A stretch of DNA of 64,000 nucleotides from Trichosphaerium sp. ATCC 40318 (GCA_038496445.1 JALMLS010000208.1:124001-188000); one strand, 5' to 3'; numbered from the stretch's first letter, positions 19,074-28,368 are shown. Numbers and translations are program-made. Notes: generated from the sequence alone by a model not told the origin.

Positions 19074-20327
19074 ATGTCACTTCTACAACTTCCATATGAA
19101 CTTCAACAATATCTATGTACTTTCAACAAGGAAACATTTCATAAGTTCCACGTGTTATCAAAAACGGCTGCTATTAACACACATTACAATGCTAGTCTGA
19201 ACAAACAAGGTATTTGGATTACTTGGTATCCATGTGGTCGTGTTCTAAATAAAACAATGATGGTTGATGGTAAAAAACAGGGAGCGATGAAACTGTGGTA
19301 TTTGAACGGACAGCTATGGTTCCATGCATGGTACAATAATGATAAACAGCATGGTAAGTACAAAAGTTGGTACACAGGAGGAAACCCTTATGTAGACGTT
19401 GTGTATGTAAAAGGACTAAAGGAAGGCATGCTAAAGCAGTGGTATGAGAACGGACAACTTAAATATCAAACAATGTATGTTAATGACAAGAAGAATGGTG
19501 AGAAAAAAATATGGAATGAGAACGGACAACTTGTGTCGCAAAAAACCTGGATTAATGACGAGAAGACTGGTGAGATAAAGACATGGCATAAAAACGGACA
19601 GCTTGCAGTACAAAAAATCTATATTGATGGGGAAGAGACTGGAGAACATAAACAGTGGTATGAGAATGGACAAATTCAGTTAAAAACAACCTATATTGAT
19701 GGAAAGGAGAATGGTGAATACTTTTGGTGGTATGCGAATGGTACAATGAAGGATCAAGCTATATACATAAAAGGTGAGAAGAATGGTGAATGCAAACTGT
19801 GGTATGATAATGGGCAACTTGAGGTGCAACGAAACTATACTAATGGCAAGAAGACTGGTGAGGAAAAGATGTGGTATGAAAATGGACAACTCCATATACA
19901 AGCAATGTATATCGAAGCAAAGAGAAATGGTGAATACAATTCATGGTATGAGGATGGTATAGTCAAGTGCCAAGCTATGTACGTTCAAGGTAAGAAGCAT
20001 GGTGAAGAAAAGATATGGTATGAAAATGGACAACTCCATATACAAGCAATGTATATCGAAGGAAAGAGAAATGGTGAATACAATTCATGGTATGAGGATG
20101 GTATACTCAAGTGCCAGGCTATGTACGTTCAAGGTAAGAAGCATGGTGAGGTAAAGAGATGGTATGAAAATGGACAAATTCACAGACAAACAATGTATAT
20201 TAAAGGAAAGAGATATGGTGAATGCAGTGTATGGCATGAGAATGGACATCTTAAGCTAAATAGAATATATGTTGATGGTAAGAGATGTGAACATCCATTA
20301 ACAACTGTGAGACGTAATTCCTTGTAA
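19074..20327 (+). CDS. Intronless F-box-like + MORN-variant (MORN_2/YwqK-type) repeat protein
   Basis: N-terminal LLQLPYELQQYLC followed by about 15 24-aa repeats GExKxWYENGQLxxxxxYxxGKK. Confidence 0.88.
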   Translation: MSLLQLPYELQQYLCTFNKETFHKFHVLSKTAAINTHYNASLNKQGIWITWYPCGRVLNKTMMVDGKKQGAMKLWYLNGQLWFHAWYNNDKQHGKYKSWYTGGNPYVDVVYVKGLKEGMLKQWYENGQLKYQTMYVNDKKNGEKKIWNENGQLVSQKTWINDEKTGEIKTWHKNGQLAVQKIYIDGEETGEHKQWYENGQIQLKTTYIDGKENGEYFWWYANGTMKDQAIYIKGEKNGECKLWYDNGQLEVQRNYTNGKKTGEEKMWYENGQLHIQAMYIEAKRNGEYNSWYEDGIVKCQAMYVQGKKHGEEKIWYENGQLHIQAMYIEGKRNGEYNSWYEDGILKCQAMYVQGKKHGEVKRWYENGQIHRQTMYIKGKRYGECSVWHENGHLKLNRIYVDGKRCEHPLTTVRRNSL

Positions 20328-20580: not shown

Positions 20581-23500
20581 TTATACCACTGATGATGCTT
20601 CAGTGGGGGCAGATGATATATCATCTGTATCATCTGTTTCAGTGTCGGATATATCAACATCATGGGCTAATGGAGACTCTATAGAAACATCTACATTTCC
20701 TGAGTTTCCTTGTCCTTTAGGTGATGAACGAGGTCTTTGTTTAGGTTCTGTTTGAATAGCCTGAGATGTCCTAGGTGCCATACTAGTCTCACTTGTCTTT
20801 GAAGTATGAACACTAGGTCCTTTACCAAATCGCCATGGAGGTTTTCCTGATACGTAAATTCTAAGAATTTTATTAGTTCAAAAAAGGACAAAAAAAAAGC
20901 ATTTCAAATTGAACCAAGACGAATTGACTTTCAAAAAAATCAATTACTGTTCTGCGTGCATCAAATTTATAGCTTCTCAACAAATGGTCTCTATGTAAAA
21001 CAAACGAGGTAAAGGTTTTTTTAAGGAATTCTTCCGTTAACAAACAGCCAACTGAAGAAAACAACTCTGTTTGTTATTATTTCTTGAGAAAAATCCAGGA
21101 ATTGTTTAAGAAGTGTTGGCACAGCACGTGTTTCAAATTAAATACAAAAAAAAAACTTGTTGTAATTTTGCACCAACAAATCAGTATGATATACAATATT
21201 TCCGTACCTGTATAGATTCCCTCCAAAAGCTATAACAATGACAAGAGTAAAAGGTACAAAAGTACCAAAAGTAAACGCTAAGAATAGAGCATATACATTA
21301 TCACGTAGAATGAAACCAATAGGTACAAGCATTAATGTAGTAAAAGTACTAACAAGTATGCATAATCCTATAATCTTGGAGTCATTAAAGTATTTCTTGT
21401 ACTTCCTTGTTCTAACAGCAAGAAACACGCCAAATAACAAGAAAGCTAGTTTGTATCCAACAAATACACCCCACCAAACAGTAGAGTCTGAAGAACATAC
21501 CAACGACTCAGACTCTAGTGGAGATAGTATTAGAGTTATTGAGCTCAAGTCAATTTAGATATATAGGTACCTAGCATTGGTTTTGGTCTGTCTACAACTG
21601 TCCAAATAGTCAAATAAACAAGTTCAATGATAACAAAGATCAGGACGTTCTAAGAAAAAACTGAGTCGTGGTTAAAGAGAATGCACTTACAAAACGAATA
21701 CAAGAGCTATGCAACAAATAAAAAAAGAAAAGAAGATTGATAAACATACACGCAGAGTCAACATAGCATGTGTTTTCCAAATAAAAAAATAGTAGCTTAA
21801 AAGCTCCCTTTGATGATACGTACAGTTATAACATCCAATCGCGTTACTTTAACTACTTTAAGCTTCTTACTCTGTACTCCATTTATTATACGCCAGAACC
21901 GCCACGCTCGACCAAATAAACTCCTGAGGAAACAAACATCAGAAAGATAGAAAAAAAAAAGACTTTTCTTTGTACCCAAAAACAAGGACGTATGCAACAC
22001 CAATGAGCCATGGTTCAATAGCACATATCCAATCTGTTGATATTGGAAACTGTAAAAACGTAACAGAAATAGCTGAAAGAGCTCCAAGGAGCATAAGAGA
22101 GCTAATAATCTAAAAAAAAGATGTCAGGACATTTTAAAAATGAAACAAAGAACAAACGCACAATGTCTTGATAGACAAAATAAGCTGGATGAATGAGCAT
22201 CGTTATAAAAACGAACAGAATAAATAAAACACATAGACTAGCTATAGCTAATGTAGTGATACGTAAACCAAGAGACACTTGTTTTGGATCAGCTAATAGA
22301 TATAAGTTAGGTAAAGACAAGACAACAATTGCCGTGTATACTTACGGTCAAAGAAGTTCACTCTAGTACGACTTGATCGGAGAGCTCCATGATATCTACA
22401 AGATAATATTTGTAAGTATATAGTTGAGTGTAATTAACATACTTAAACTCAGTAGCTTCAGGGTGGAACGCAAATATGATTTGTTGATCAACATTACGTA
22501 TTTCTTTATCTAAAACGCCGTCAGTGTTCATAACTGGTCTCTTAAATCGATATATCCTTGATACAAGTAATAAGCAAAAACAACAACCAACAAAACTATC
22601 AAGTCCAAAAAAGACGATAAAAAAAGAGGAATATTACAAGAATACACAATATGTACGTACGATCTTCCTGATGATCTACTTGCAGAGATCATAACAACAT
22701 CATTAGAACCACCCAATTCAGTATCTGGTGTAGGAACACCAACATCTTCAGCATATCGATCATCACAGTATCCAGTAGCTGTGACAGTATTCCACGTGCA
22801 TAGAATGATATCTGTAAAAAATTTGTTAAGTACAAGCAACAATGATAGTTTTTAAGGTTACCTGCATCAGCCATAGTTCCAGGAAGAGGTTCAAAACCTA
22901 AACCAACCCAACCTTGAGTTTTAGTTTGTATTATATACTCAATAAACTCATTATCATCATCCATCTCCCAAGAAAGTTGATAATTTGGTGCTAACTGAAG
23001 CGTGTTTTTTAAAGGATTGTCAGGTGTGATAAATAAACCATCATCTGAGAAAGTCTTCGTTAGTGACACAAGAAAAGGCTTACAGTTCTGTAAGGGCAGA
23101 TAAATACGTACTCTGGCTTGTGAGTTGCCTATTACTTACAAAGAAAGCAGAGGTTGGAATAGCAGCATCAGAAACATCAAAGTTTCTGATAATCAAATCT
23201 CTTAAATTAGTTTGGAAAACTTCAGTTATTTCATCTCTTGTGAAATAATCAGTGTTTTCATACCAGAACCTTCAAAGTGATTAGCTAATTTTAATTTAGG
23301 TTAAATGATATCATACCTGTCTCCATCACGAAGTCGAGCGATTTGATCAGTAAGTGAAGTTGCAAAAAGCTCGCCAACACTTCCACCAACAACATGATCT
23401 ATTAGAAAACAAAAATCAGTTTGCAACCCACAGGTAGGAACGAGGATTTCTACTTACCTTCACAAATACCTCCAAGCCAAGCATCTATATTATCTACAGA

Positions 23501-25823
23501 TCCATAAACATCTCTCAAGGCATCCTGGATCTCAACAACAGAGCTTATTTCTTCAAAAGATGTTTTCCGTGGTAAACCCATATTTTCTCTTACAGTGTTA
23601 TAGTCAGGTAATCCAACATCACGTCCACGATGAATATCAATAGAAAATAGATCAAATCCTTGTGTATTATCAAGAAACATAAAATTACGAAGATCATCTA
23701 TCATATGTGGTCCAACCTTAAAACAACAAAGAATTAGCAAGTAAAACAAAAAAAAGTATTTCGTTCTTATACACGTGCACAAAAAATAAAATTATTCATT
23801 AAACTGTTTGTTTCGTTTAAGTAGTTTGTTTGTAAAGAATTTCGGCGGGCGATTGCTTGCTACAAAGTAACAGAACAGCGAAAAAAAAGAAGAAAACAAG
23901 TAAATTTCATGAAAGCATTATAAAAGCGTTTACCTTTCCTCCCCTTGTATTAGCTGCTCCACGCAAGTAAGAAGCTTCAGCTTCTCCATTACTTGTACTC
24001 ATTTGTTTAAGATAAAGATCACTATTCCAAAATATATCACGCATTAGCACATGCCCTTCAGGTTCTTCATTGAGATCATTATCAAGACGACTGAAAATAC
24101 TACGTAAAGCACCATGACCATAGCGGAATCCAGCAGCAGTAAAGAAAATATCTATAGATGGATCCACAGTTGCATTATAACCTTTATAAAAAACAAACGT
24201 TTTAGGTAATGTAACCACGTGCTAAAACTGCCCAAAGAAAAAGTTGTTCGTTTCCACTCTTTGGGTTGTTAAGCAACAGCTTGAACTCAAATCGGTAGTC
24301 TGAATAAGTACGTACCTTTATAAGGAGGTAATGGTTCTCCAACAACTGCAGCAAGGTATTCCCTTGATGAAATTTTCTGCCAAATAGCAATAGTCATTCT
24401 CCTTGCTTCTTCAAACAAAGTTGTGTCGTCCAAGGTACTATTCGATAATTTTATCTCATCGCAACGACGGTTATGTTCTCTCATCCATAAAGAGTGTTGA
24501 GAGTAACCCATAGGATGAGCATTTACTCTAAAATCTCCTGCTGGTCGAAACGAACTTTGATCTCTTGCCAAAGTCGTGTTGAATCTAAAAACAACATTAA
24601 TACAACCCAGTAGATTACTCATTGGTTGTAGCTTCCACTCTGTATTTAACGTACTCTTCAGTGTAAGTGAGATTAAATTTACATCCCACAATAGAACTTA
24701 CATATTCAGTGTTACCATAAACCCACGAAAGATCAAGAAAATGTGTATGTCTATTTGACAGTTTTCTTATATTACTTGTAGAATTACCAGTTCCTGCAAC
24801 TGTTTCTCCTCTTTCAAAAGGTATGCTATGAGCGTTACCACTACAAGATGGTATAGGCATAACAGAATTACGCATACAACCTGTACCATTAACAACAGGC
24901 ACATGGTTATAAGCCTAAAATAAAACAAGTCAAATTTGTGCTTTACAAACAAAAAAATGCTCTATGGCACACAGCAAAAATAATCAATGTTTTCAATACC
25001 TAAAAATGTAGGACATATACACAATAAAATTCAAAATTGTACATGTACGTATTGAGCCAGAAATGAAAGCGGAGGTTTTACGTAAAACGAATAGTTTTTT
25101 TGTTAGATATGAGGTATTCAGATTGGCTTCAAAACTTACACGCTGAGCACCATCGTATGGTCCAATTGACATATCATGTGTATTATAACCATGTACTTTA
25201 TCGCATGTAGGTATATGAATAGGCATTTGGTCTTGACCTGTTGCCATAAAAGATATATCATTATTAATCATTTCAGCCCAATAAACAAGAAATTGATTTG
25301 CGAACACCGAGCTTGGTCCCATGTACGGAATCTCTGCGAAACGATTCCTTAATAGCATATTAGTGCTGTCTGCAAGACGAAGGAGTGTTGGGTGTAAAGT
25401 CAACATTCTACGAGATAAATATGTGTTTCGAGGCGTTGTGTACGATAGTTCTTCAGAGCTAATTTGGACAGAGAAAGCGTTTTAACGCCAAAAAAGGAAT
25501 TTGTTTTTTTCTGATTCGTATTTTAAGGTACACGTACGAAATATTGCGCGCAGCCATACGAGACGCGCCAGTAGGCGAGTTTACGCCATTTGCGTATAGT
25601 GGCAAGTTGTACGCATTAATAAAAGGAGACCAACTCTCACCGCGTGTCCTACCATCTGGTAGTACAGTGGCGCTATTGCCGTTGCCGGTTACAGAACGGT
25701 ACTCTATGTATCCTCAGGTCAGAAAAGATTCCTTTAGTTGACTTTACCTCTAGAATGCGCTAATACGCAGAATAACGCAATATATGATACCCAGCGTGTT
25801 GTTGTCGCAGTACGTTGGAGCAT
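20581..25823 (-). CDS. Fusion: signal peptide - animal-type heme-peroxidase-like domain - DOMON - class C GPCR 7TM - acidic tail
   Basis: Hand-spliced with all junctions in frame. Peroxidase motifs EYRSVTGNGN, THFLDLSWVYG, AGDFRVN, WMREHNR, FRYGH, IHRGRDVGLPDYN, RLRDGDRFWYEN. DOMON GWVGLGF..GTMADADI..YHG. 7TM C-AIEPWL, LFGRAWRFWRI, WTVVD, GYKLAFLLFGVFLAVRTR, FNDSKIIG. Confidence 0.88.
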
Positions 25824-26485: not shown

Positions 26486-28368
26486 TTAAGCGCTCCACAA
26501 TCTCACTGTACCATCGAATGAAGCTGTAGCAAGATTATCTGTACCTGGCTTTCTGTACATATCTCTTATAGTATTTGTATGTCCCTTCAAAGACGTTATC
26601 TCCTTCTCATTTCCAACTCCAAAAATATGAACACGATGATCTTCAGCTGTCTAGGAAGCTTTGTAAGTTTCCCACATGGTATTAATTGATCTATTTTAGA
26701 ACTTACTGTGTATACAGATCCACCGTTTTCAGACCATTCACACCTTTTGATAAACAGTAAGACAACTGACTTTTGTTTTCATCGAAAAAAAGCTTGGGTT
26801 TAGGAAGATGTAACGTACTTTGGTGTACTCCATACATCGTTTTTCATACCATAAAAATTACGAACTTGATATGATGAAGCAGTTCGGAACATGATAAGTC
26901 TATGTTTGTCTAAGAGGTGGTAAGACTTTCTTTTTTTCGAACGATAAAAAAAAACCAACAAATTTTTTTGAATAACTTAAAGAACAAGCCTTGTATTACC
27001 TGTTGCAACAAGTAGGTACTTATCATCAGAAGATAGTTTAATATCCATTGCTGTGAATGATATAAAATCATCCCCATTTTGATTCATATTTACATAAGTG
27101 TCCTAGACCACAAAAGAAGTGAATAAAGTTATCATAGTAAAAATAGATTGTAAATTTCGTCATCACTGAAACATACCTCCAATGTCTCCAAGTTAATGTA
27201 ATGAAGAACACAATCACCTCTTACTGCAGCAATAAGTGTTTTACTGTCTTTTGTAAAGGCAAGGGACTCCACATTACCAACAAAACTGTAATTCTTTATG
27301 AACTTATACTTGCCCTGTTTTTTTCAGAGAAAAAATTAAAACCAAAAAAACATATTTGACTAATCATCAGTACTAACCTCATTCTCTGGATCTCTTTGAT
27401 ACAAACGTACAGAGTGATCATAAGAAGCAGTTGCAAAAAAATTACCATCTGGAGACCATTTAATAGCAATAACATATTTTCCGTGATCTTTCCATTGTTG
27501 TATAACTGCATCTTTTATATCTGGTTTACTAACATCCAATAAATAATGAGAATGATCCATAAGTCCTGCTAGTAGTATATTTTCATCTAAGAAAGTAAAG
27601 TTAATCGATTATCTTGACATGATTACCGTAATTGTTCATTTTAGAAAATTAGAATTTTTTAGTCTAATTTGGAAAAGATTGTTTTTAGGTGCCTACCTGT
27701 TGGGTGATAGTCCAATGATATTGCTCCAGCACGTCCTAGAGAGTACTTATGTTTTACTTCGTCCTTCTCTAAATCGTAAATCGCCAGTGTACGGTCTCCA
27801 GAAGCAGAAGCCAACAATTCTATTAATCGCGATAAAAAGTCAGCTTCGCGAATTGCGCCATGTGGTTTAAAATGGAATTTACATGGATCAATACGATATA
27901 ATATGGCGTGAGTGCATAAAAGATATAGTTTGACAGCGTATTGCATCAAAGGAAAAAACTTTCGAAAATTACACTGAAAACTTGATGCAAAATGCTTTTG
28001 TATGTTCCCTTACGCTAGATATCGTTTTAAAATAGTCAATACGTACCTTTATGGGGAGAATAACGAACTGCAAGCACTGAGGCAGAATGAACGCCTTTGA
28101 TCTCTTTGGTACATTGTTTGATGTGTTTATCCGCGTTTAGGGATAGCTAGATGCCAATTACAATTAATTCAAGCGTTAACATGCGTAATAATCAACGACA
28201 TACCAATCTTTGGCGTTCAGAAGGTATTTTAGAATCGTTATAGCCTTTGAACTCTTCAAGTAGCGCTGTTTTTGTTTTTTCGAACCCCAGATTATCTAAA
28301 CACTCTAGCATCCATCCTACCTTTGCCTCAGTCGAAAATTTATCAATAGATTGCTGTTCTTCACTCAT
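26486..28368 (-). CDS. WD40-repeat protein with a possible N-terminal LisH-like motif
   Basis: HGKYVIAIKWSPDGNFFATASYDHSVRLY, LASASGDRTLAIYD and ASFDGTVRLWSA*; multi-exon. Confidence 0.85.

Follow-up and report, generated by a model that had tools for sequence, protein, structure and literature searches.

The roles of individual heme-pocket residues in peroxidases have been described previously (PMC3533774), including for the structure of PoxA from Dictyostelium discoideum (DdPoxA, PDB 6ERC; PMC5787809), a soluble protein that binds heme through a single Glu ester and has a distal Gln-His-Arg and a proximal His-Asn-Arg triad. Peroxidasins are described as having, without exception, a fully conserved distal His-Arg pair (PMC3533774). 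Human DUOX1 (PDB 7D3E/6WXR) carries an extracellular peroxidase-like domain without catalytic residues, fused to a membrane domain; it has no heme-ligand His and no heme (PMC7794343). Among DOMON domains, those of CYBDOM proteins conserve the Met/His pair known from the cytochrome domain of cellobiose dehydrogenase; sugar-binding DOMONs and dopamine beta-hydroxylase do not (PMC10691727). Here we describe a gene, C80, in a 64,000-nucleotide stretch ('the window') of the genome of Trichosphaerium sp. ATCC 40318 (GCA_038496445.1, JALMLS010000208.1:124001-188000), a eukaryotic, intron-rich assembly of 70 Mb in 642 contigs. It encodes a receptor with a peroxidase fold and a DOMON outside the membrane and a class C seven-transmembrane (7TM) domain within it. 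Judged from its residues, the C80 ectodomain would, by a slight preference, be a non-covalent heme-binding sensor module and not a classical peroxidase.

C80 is an intact receptor gene. It runs along the minus strand of the window, from an ATG that starts at 25823 to a stop codon whose last base is 20581, with 19 exons that encode 1109 residues in an open reading frame (ORF) without a stop or frameshift. Splice sites were set manually by GT-AG rules and paralogue alignment; every intron is GT-AG, ranging in length from 35 to 347 nt, and our own protein-to-genome spliced aligner gives the same 19-exon model again. A paralogue in the same genome, C1, aligns with residues 22-1104 of C80 with zero stops, including over the junction of the shortest intron. 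The domain order is a signal peptide, a peroxidase fold (approximately residues 26-600), a DOMON (approximately residues 601-766), a class C 7TM domain and an acidic, Ser/Thr-rich tail.

All features of the gene lie on the minus strand. Exon 1 (25748..25823) encodes an N-terminus that resembles a signal peptide (MLQRTATTTRWVSYIALFCVLAHS) by sequence reading and a hydropathy scan, and its junction over the 35-nt intron is the one conserved with C1. Exons 2-9 (23112..25712) encode an An_peroxidase domain of the peroxidase-cyclooxygenase superfamily. Pfam scans were run on in-frame single exons and not on the joined protein; five exon fragments match PF03098, among them exon 7 with 88.5, exon 5 with 77 and exon 6 with 38.6 bits (cut-off 25), and matches in the PDB include lactoperoxidase (LPO), myeloperoxidase (MPO), EPO and DdPoxA. 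The DOMON is encoded by exons 10-13 (22346..23044) and ends approximately 15-30 residues before the first membrane helix. Exons 14-18 (21208..22292) encode the class C 7TM domain, identified by a 7tm_3 match (PF00003) of 52 bits on the last large exon (cut-off 33.5) and by seven hydrophobic segments between residues 782 and 1009 in the hydropathy scan. Exon 19 (20581..20860) encodes a cytoplasmic tail with many Ser, Thr and acidic residues, whose end, SSAPTE, is common to C1 by sequence and alignment. Together An_peroxidase and DOMON fully cover the ectodomain, in which Pfam finds neither a Venus-flytrap domain (ANF_receptor/PBP) nor a cysteine-rich linker.

Residues of the peroxidase heme pocket were mapped in MPO numbering by MAFFT alignment of the locally joined peroxidase part of C80 with 80 homologues, taken from the best 150 of 2864 representatives matched by exon 7, and further by alignment to solved chains in the PDB (MPO, LPO, DdPoxA). 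Exon 3, which contains the distal motif, by itself has no Pfam match and no peroxidase match in the PDB; it is too divergent for either approach alone, and the multiple alignment was therefore used for the distal motif. An initial annotation of this DNA had described the receptor ectodomain as a pseudo-peroxidase on the basis of several short motifs, all of which are present in the sequence on the minus strand, with YWAEMINNDIS at 25283-25251 (about 25253-25285 in that annotation). In that motif (residues 126-136), W-A-E-M-I-N-N-D falls on the family motif W-G-Q-F-x-D-H-D. The alignment and its column counts bear out the three replacements claimed there: the distal Gln91 becomes Glu129, the ester-linking Asp94 becomes Asn132 and the distal base His95 becomes Asn133, while the calcium ligand Asp96 is kept as Asp134. 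The distal His column is occupied by His in 66 of the 80 homologues, the remainder being mainly gaps or misaligned rows; the codon of Asn133 (AAT, at 25264-25262) is a single base away from a His codon (CAT).

Elsewhere in the fold, the calcium loop THFLDLS (24726..24746) keeps the equivalents of Thr168, Asp172 and Ser174, by column counts and a weak DUOX1 alignment, so that together with Asp96 all positions of the distal calcium site are occupied. GDFRVNAH (24515..24538) aligns with GDTRSSEM of MPO in the phmmer alignments to MPO and LPO chains; the distal Arg239 is kept as Arg281, the ester-linking Glu242, present in 77/80 homologues, is lost to Ala284, as had been read from the motif, and Met243, which forms the sulfonium link in MPO, becomes His285. 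In FRYGH (24114..24128) both Arg333 (Arg371) and the proximal His336 (His374) are kept, by LPO alignment and column counts. The initial annotation's list of retained proximal His, distal Arg and calcium loop thus agrees with the alignments; its retained 'LRN' Asn does not, because the DDLRNF segment aligns with Ile290-Arg291-Glu292 of MPO. The true position of Asn421, the partner of the proximal His (index 309 of the MPO heavy chain), pairs instead with Asp461 of DLFSIDIHRGRD (23618..23653), in which Arg424 is kept as Arg464. Homologues have Asn at the Asn421 column in 75 of 80 cases, His at His336 in 78, and Arg without exception (80/80) at Arg239, Arg333 and Arg424. By alignment, C80 thus keeps its calcium site, the distal Arg281 and, on the proximal side, His374, Arg371 and Arg464, and has lost both residues that link heme covalently.

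The DOMON contains the two residues that the initial annotation had singled out as cytochrome-type ligands, Met658 in GTMADAD (22880-22810, spanning an intron) and His752 in KYHG (22444-22386, also spanning an intron), and in a three-way paralogue alignment both are invariant. That alignment of C80, C1 and a third paralogue, C35, also shows an invariant TM..AD motif, KYHG, two Cys and an IIFAFHP strand, and places the DOMON among the best-conserved parts of the receptor (51-53% identity to each paralogue; 63/164 columns invariant). Exon 10 alone scores 32.2 bits against PF03351 (cut-off 32.7), the C35 exons add profile positions 42-99, and there is a weak match to the cellobiose dehydrogenase cytochrome domain. 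Met658 lies at approximately position 42 of 124 in the Pfam profile and also at the end of this weak match. Searched against the PDB, exon 10 returned chance matches only, and the genome offered no DOMON-b561 protein as an alignment bridge, its only two b561 loci (contigs C36 and C83) being without a DOMON match. The assignment of Met658 and His752 as candidate ligands is consistent with heme binding.

Three genes in the genome, and exactly three by Pfam models and two diagnostic exons, have the peroxidase-DOMON-7tm_3 architecture: C80, C1 and C35. In a tree of the three receptors, the 80 homologues and eight other peroxidases of the same genome, they form a single clade (support 1.0) in which C80 and C1 are sisters (support 0.85). 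The C1 receptor is intact, with 25 exons at approximately C1 618000-622500 (L027:3017-7504, plus strand); it is not among the matches of the genome-wide 7tm_3 listing. The N-terminal exons of C35 were read by eye, and there (L013:2284-2505) no in-frame GT-AG intron was found between the exon with 'EFRRIDGYNNT' and the next, which might be explained by a GC-AG intron, by an error in the assembly or by another first exon.

Pocket columns differ in their constancy across this family. Arg239, Arg333, His336, Arg424, Asp96, Asp172 and Ser174 are identical in all three receptors. The distal column of His95 reads Asn in C80, His in C1 (within FWGEAINHD) and Val in C35; that of Gln91 reads Glu, Glu and Gln; that of Asp94 Asn, Asn and Thr; that of Glu242 Ala, Gln and Lys; and that of Asn421 Asp, Asp and Asn, in the same order. 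Both ester-link residues, Asp94 and Glu242, are thereby lost in every copy. The His-to-Asn change that the initial annotation had proposed to look for in relatives is not shared by C1 or C35: by alignment, loss of the distal His is specific to individual copies, occurred twice independently and is not a family trait, and the sister copy C1 still holds the His/Arg pair. Relative-rate tests with C35 as outgroup give 29 unique changes in C80 against 40 in C1 for the peroxidase part (p = 0.19), 23 against 22 for the DOMON and 20 against 31 for the 7TM domain (all p > 0.1). Because C80 shows no rate excess over C1 in any domain, its fold is taken to have stayed under constraint once the His had gone, which argues for a conserved role that would be independent of the distal His.

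With the distal His, Gln and Asp and the ester Glu replaced, and the proximal His, distal Arg and calcium loop kept, a classical Compound I cycle is unlikely in C80; the initial annotation's suggestion that the domain lacks classical peroxidase activity agrees with these pocket losses, and we consider it probable that the domain is incapable of the His/Arg-driven cycle. An invariant proximal side beside a drifting distal side fits a domain that may continue to hold heme b and is no longer selected for classical turnover. We lean, if only a little, towards a peroxidase domain that still holds one non-covalent, His-ligated heme b, and the chances of a second, Met/His-ligated heme b in the DOMON seem to us a shade better than even. 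In these receptors a secreted-type heme-peroxidase fold followed by the DOMON stands in for the ligand-binding 'flytrap' of a class C GPCR (G-protein-coupled receptor), and a change of conformation in the ectodomain could inform the 7TM bundle of a small ligand of the heme, of a redox change or of heme itself. Such conformational reporting from ectodomain to 7TM is our preferred mechanism, tentatively held and at somewhat less than even chances. A bolder reading, which we regard as doubtful, is that the three genes constitute an undescribed class of extracellular heme sensors wired directly to G-protein signalling, with a two-heme unit (a His-ligated heme in the peroxidase fold and a Met/His heme in the DOMON) atop a class C 7TM. 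The receptor would then be activated by H2O2, a gas or other small ligand, by an extracellular redox shift or by capturing free heme reversibly, and the paralogues (His in C1, Asn in C80, Val in C35) would form a natural series, each tuned to a different ligand or reactivity.

Several points weigh against a heme-binding sensor. That either site holds heme, that a ligand is sensed and that transfer takes place between hemes is what we infer from the sequence, and the splicing and expression of C80 are taken from homology. The distal residues differ in C80, C1 and C35, with no single alternative pocket chemistry conserved, and heme might be held less well with Asp in place of Asn421 and with neither ester link present. 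Human DUOX1, whose domain is heme-free, also keeps its calcium site, and because that cation site is needed for folding (PMC7794343), the kept calcium loop of C80 is not evidence for heme. For the DOMON, the match of Met and His with known ligands comes from the motifs and from positions in the Pfam profile, not from residue-level alignment to cellobiose dehydrogenase or CYBDOM proteins. As to electron transfer, the 7TM domain of C80 is not a domain of that kind: it has no b561-type heme histidines, and since the b561 contigs C36 and C83 are without a DOMON match, a heme in the DOMON would have no obvious transmembrane source of electrons.

The DUOX1 analogy can be taken further, to a peroxidase fold that would be a heme-free scaffold atop the 7TM, serving as a structural cap, as a surface for dimerisation or adhesion, or as the site of a non-heme ligand. 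In human DUOX1 the peroxidase homology domain shows no heme density, keeps cation sites for folding and packs on its membrane domain (PMC7794343), and much the same fate is suggested for C80 by its loss of both covalent-link residues and the distal His, by the altered Asn421 and by distal pocket residues that are not conserved among the paralogues. Unlike human DUOX1, however, all three paralogues keep His336, the propionate-binding Arg333 and Arg424 and the distal Arg239, and the invariance of those columns while adjacent pocket columns drift is hard to explain without heme; we therefore consider a heme-free peroxidase fold unlikely. In another reading, the domain would still be an enzyme, of a non-classical kind. 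Glu/Arg or Asp/Arg pairs cleave H2O2 in chloroperoxidase, unspecific peroxygenases and dye-decolourising peroxidases, and by analogy Arg281 might do so here together with Glu129, which occupies the Gln91 column, or perhaps with His285 in the Met243 column. The Glu at the Gln91 column is common to C80 and C1, Arg239 is invariant and the C80 peroxidase domain evolves no faster than that of C1, all of which such an enzyme would account for; but C35 has Gln, Thr and Val at these distal positions, with no acidic residue, so that the chemistry could not be family-wide, and we know of no member of the superfamily that uses such an acid/Arg pair. Residual catalysis of this kind seems to us quite improbable.

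Decay or artefact is a further reading of the Asn133 codon, either as part of a young pseudogene that arose by duplication from the C1 lineage or as an assembly error in AAT. That the sister C1 keeps the His, that Asn133 is one base from His and that expression of C80 is assigned by homology are all compatible with it. Against this stand 1109 codons over 19 exons with no stop or frameshift and with splice sites that are all GT-AG, the lack of rate acceleration relative to C1 in any domain, and four further changed pocket columns, given which correction of a single base would not restore a classical site. Given the intact ORF and the flat relative-rate test, we reject a pseudogene as the main explanation, and we give decay or artefact of any kind very little credence. 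A heme-binding sensor module thus remains our preferred, if only slightly favoured, reading of the C80 ectodomain.

Among the best 150 of the 2864 representatives matched by exon 7, none has a C80-like DOMON or 7TM domain, and a word-index search with the exon 3 ORF gave no match. The sole metagenome match to the conserved DOMON exon (L028) was rejected as an out-of-frame chance match on a bacterial contig. Because the genome's own paralogues are not in the searched libraries, the missing orthologues are weak evidence. The nearest outside relative, P0101, a free-standing peroxidase, lacks both ester residues and keeps the distal His; it was rejected as an orthologue, because its gene, complete on a contig of 2.5 kb, encodes 596 aa with Big_9 and peroxidase domains and neither a DOMON nor a 7TM. 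We found no description of a peroxidase-DOMON-GPCR in the papers searched, and to our knowledge no GPCR senses through a heme-peroxidase fold or a cytochrome-type DOMON. If the ectodomain does bind heme, it would directly link extracellular heme or redox chemistry to G-protein signalling in a phagocytic protist; if it is heme-free, then DUOX would no longer be the sole case of a membrane protein capped by a reused peroxidase fold, and C80 would be an independent second one. With their differing distal pockets, C80, C1 and C35 provide a ready comparison set for the conversion of a catalytic heme pocket into a sensor.

The same genome contains approximately nine other peroxidase loci that are fully canonical (FGQFIDHDI, GDVRVNE, FRFGHSL, ..NLQRGRD). 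Canonical loci L001-L009 and L011 lie on contigs C97, C57, C34, C90, C133, C127 and C37, and several have identical motif sets, which suggests recent duplicates. A second group (L012 and L014-L019, on C78, with three loci, and on C117, C99, C125 and C22) has distal motifs of the FGQFIMHDL type, in which the His is kept and Asp94 is replaced by Met, Thr or Ser, and mostly GDERSSS, i.e. a replaced Glu242; it may be a non-covalent-heme subfamily. Two near-identical loci (C165:139181-141191 and C87:9953-11977; L010 and L025) have YSQYKHKDV at the expected distal motif, which may be another His-shifted or degenerate pocket. A peroxidase-like locus at C242:37572-38575 (L022) has Asp at the Asn421 column (DLTAKDIERGRD) and keeps Glu242.

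Within the window, the C80 gene is flanked on its downstream side by a single-exon ORF of 417 aa (19074-20327, plus strand) that consists of little else than MORN-type repeats (W.ENGQL...); the two genes converge, and the ORF stops approximately 250 bp from the receptor stop codon. Upstream of the receptor, at approximately 26489-27949 on the minus strand, are WD40-like exons (GDRTLAIYDLE, DHSVRLYQ, DGTVRLWSA) of a neighbouring gene.

Compared with known systems, the peroxidase part of C80 belongs to the same fold family as DdPoxA, with exon 7 matching 6ERC at E = 9e-16; its match to 8S6C, a chain of 528 aa that was deposited under the name 'Lactoperoxidase', has E = 6e-20. The proximal His and Arg, the distal Arg and the calcium site are the same in both; in C80, however, the His, Gln and Glu of DdPoxA are replaced and the Asn has become Asp, and the domain is joined in one chain with a DOMON and a 7TM. 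Variation at some of these columns has a parallel in the vertebrate peroxidasin-like group Pxd2 (PXDNL), natural members of the superfamily that vary at Gln91, at Asp94 and at the Asn421 column, where Asp is among the residues that occur (PMC3533774), although Pxd2 is a secreted multidomain matrix protein and not a receptor. CYBDOM proteins, in which a DOMON is combined with cytochrome b561 (SDR2/FRRS1, CG8399 and plant CRR/HYP1), resemble C80 in holding an extracellular DOMON with conserved Met and His directly above a multi-helix membrane domain (PMC10691727), and for these and the cellobiose dehydrogenase cytochrome domain the DOMON Met has approximately the Pfam profile position of Met658; the membrane part of C80 differs, being a 7tm_3 GPCR that lacks the heme-ligating b561 histidines to be expected for electron transfer.

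C80 shares with class C GPCRs (GABA-B, mGlu and the Dictyostelium Grl type) a 7tm_3 match above cut-off and seven hydrophobic segments, and departs from them in an ectodomain of peroxidase and DOMON in place of a Venus-flytrap and cysteine-rich linker. It is one of more than 100 separate 7tm_3 loci in its 70-Mb genome, in which class C GPCRs have thus expanded greatly. For a membrane protein capped by a dead peroxidase fold, the nearest precedent is the peroxidase homology domain of human DUOX1. Exons 4 and 5 of C80 match DUOX1 weakly, a calcium-type cation site is kept in both, and the peroxidase domain of C80 probably sits on its membrane domain as that of DUOX1 does. The two differ in that C80, C1 and C35 keep the equivalent of His336, in that the membrane partner in DUOX1 is a NOX heme/flavin electron-transfer domain and not a GPCR, and in that C80 places a DOMON between peroxidase fold and membrane, a domain that DUOX lacks.

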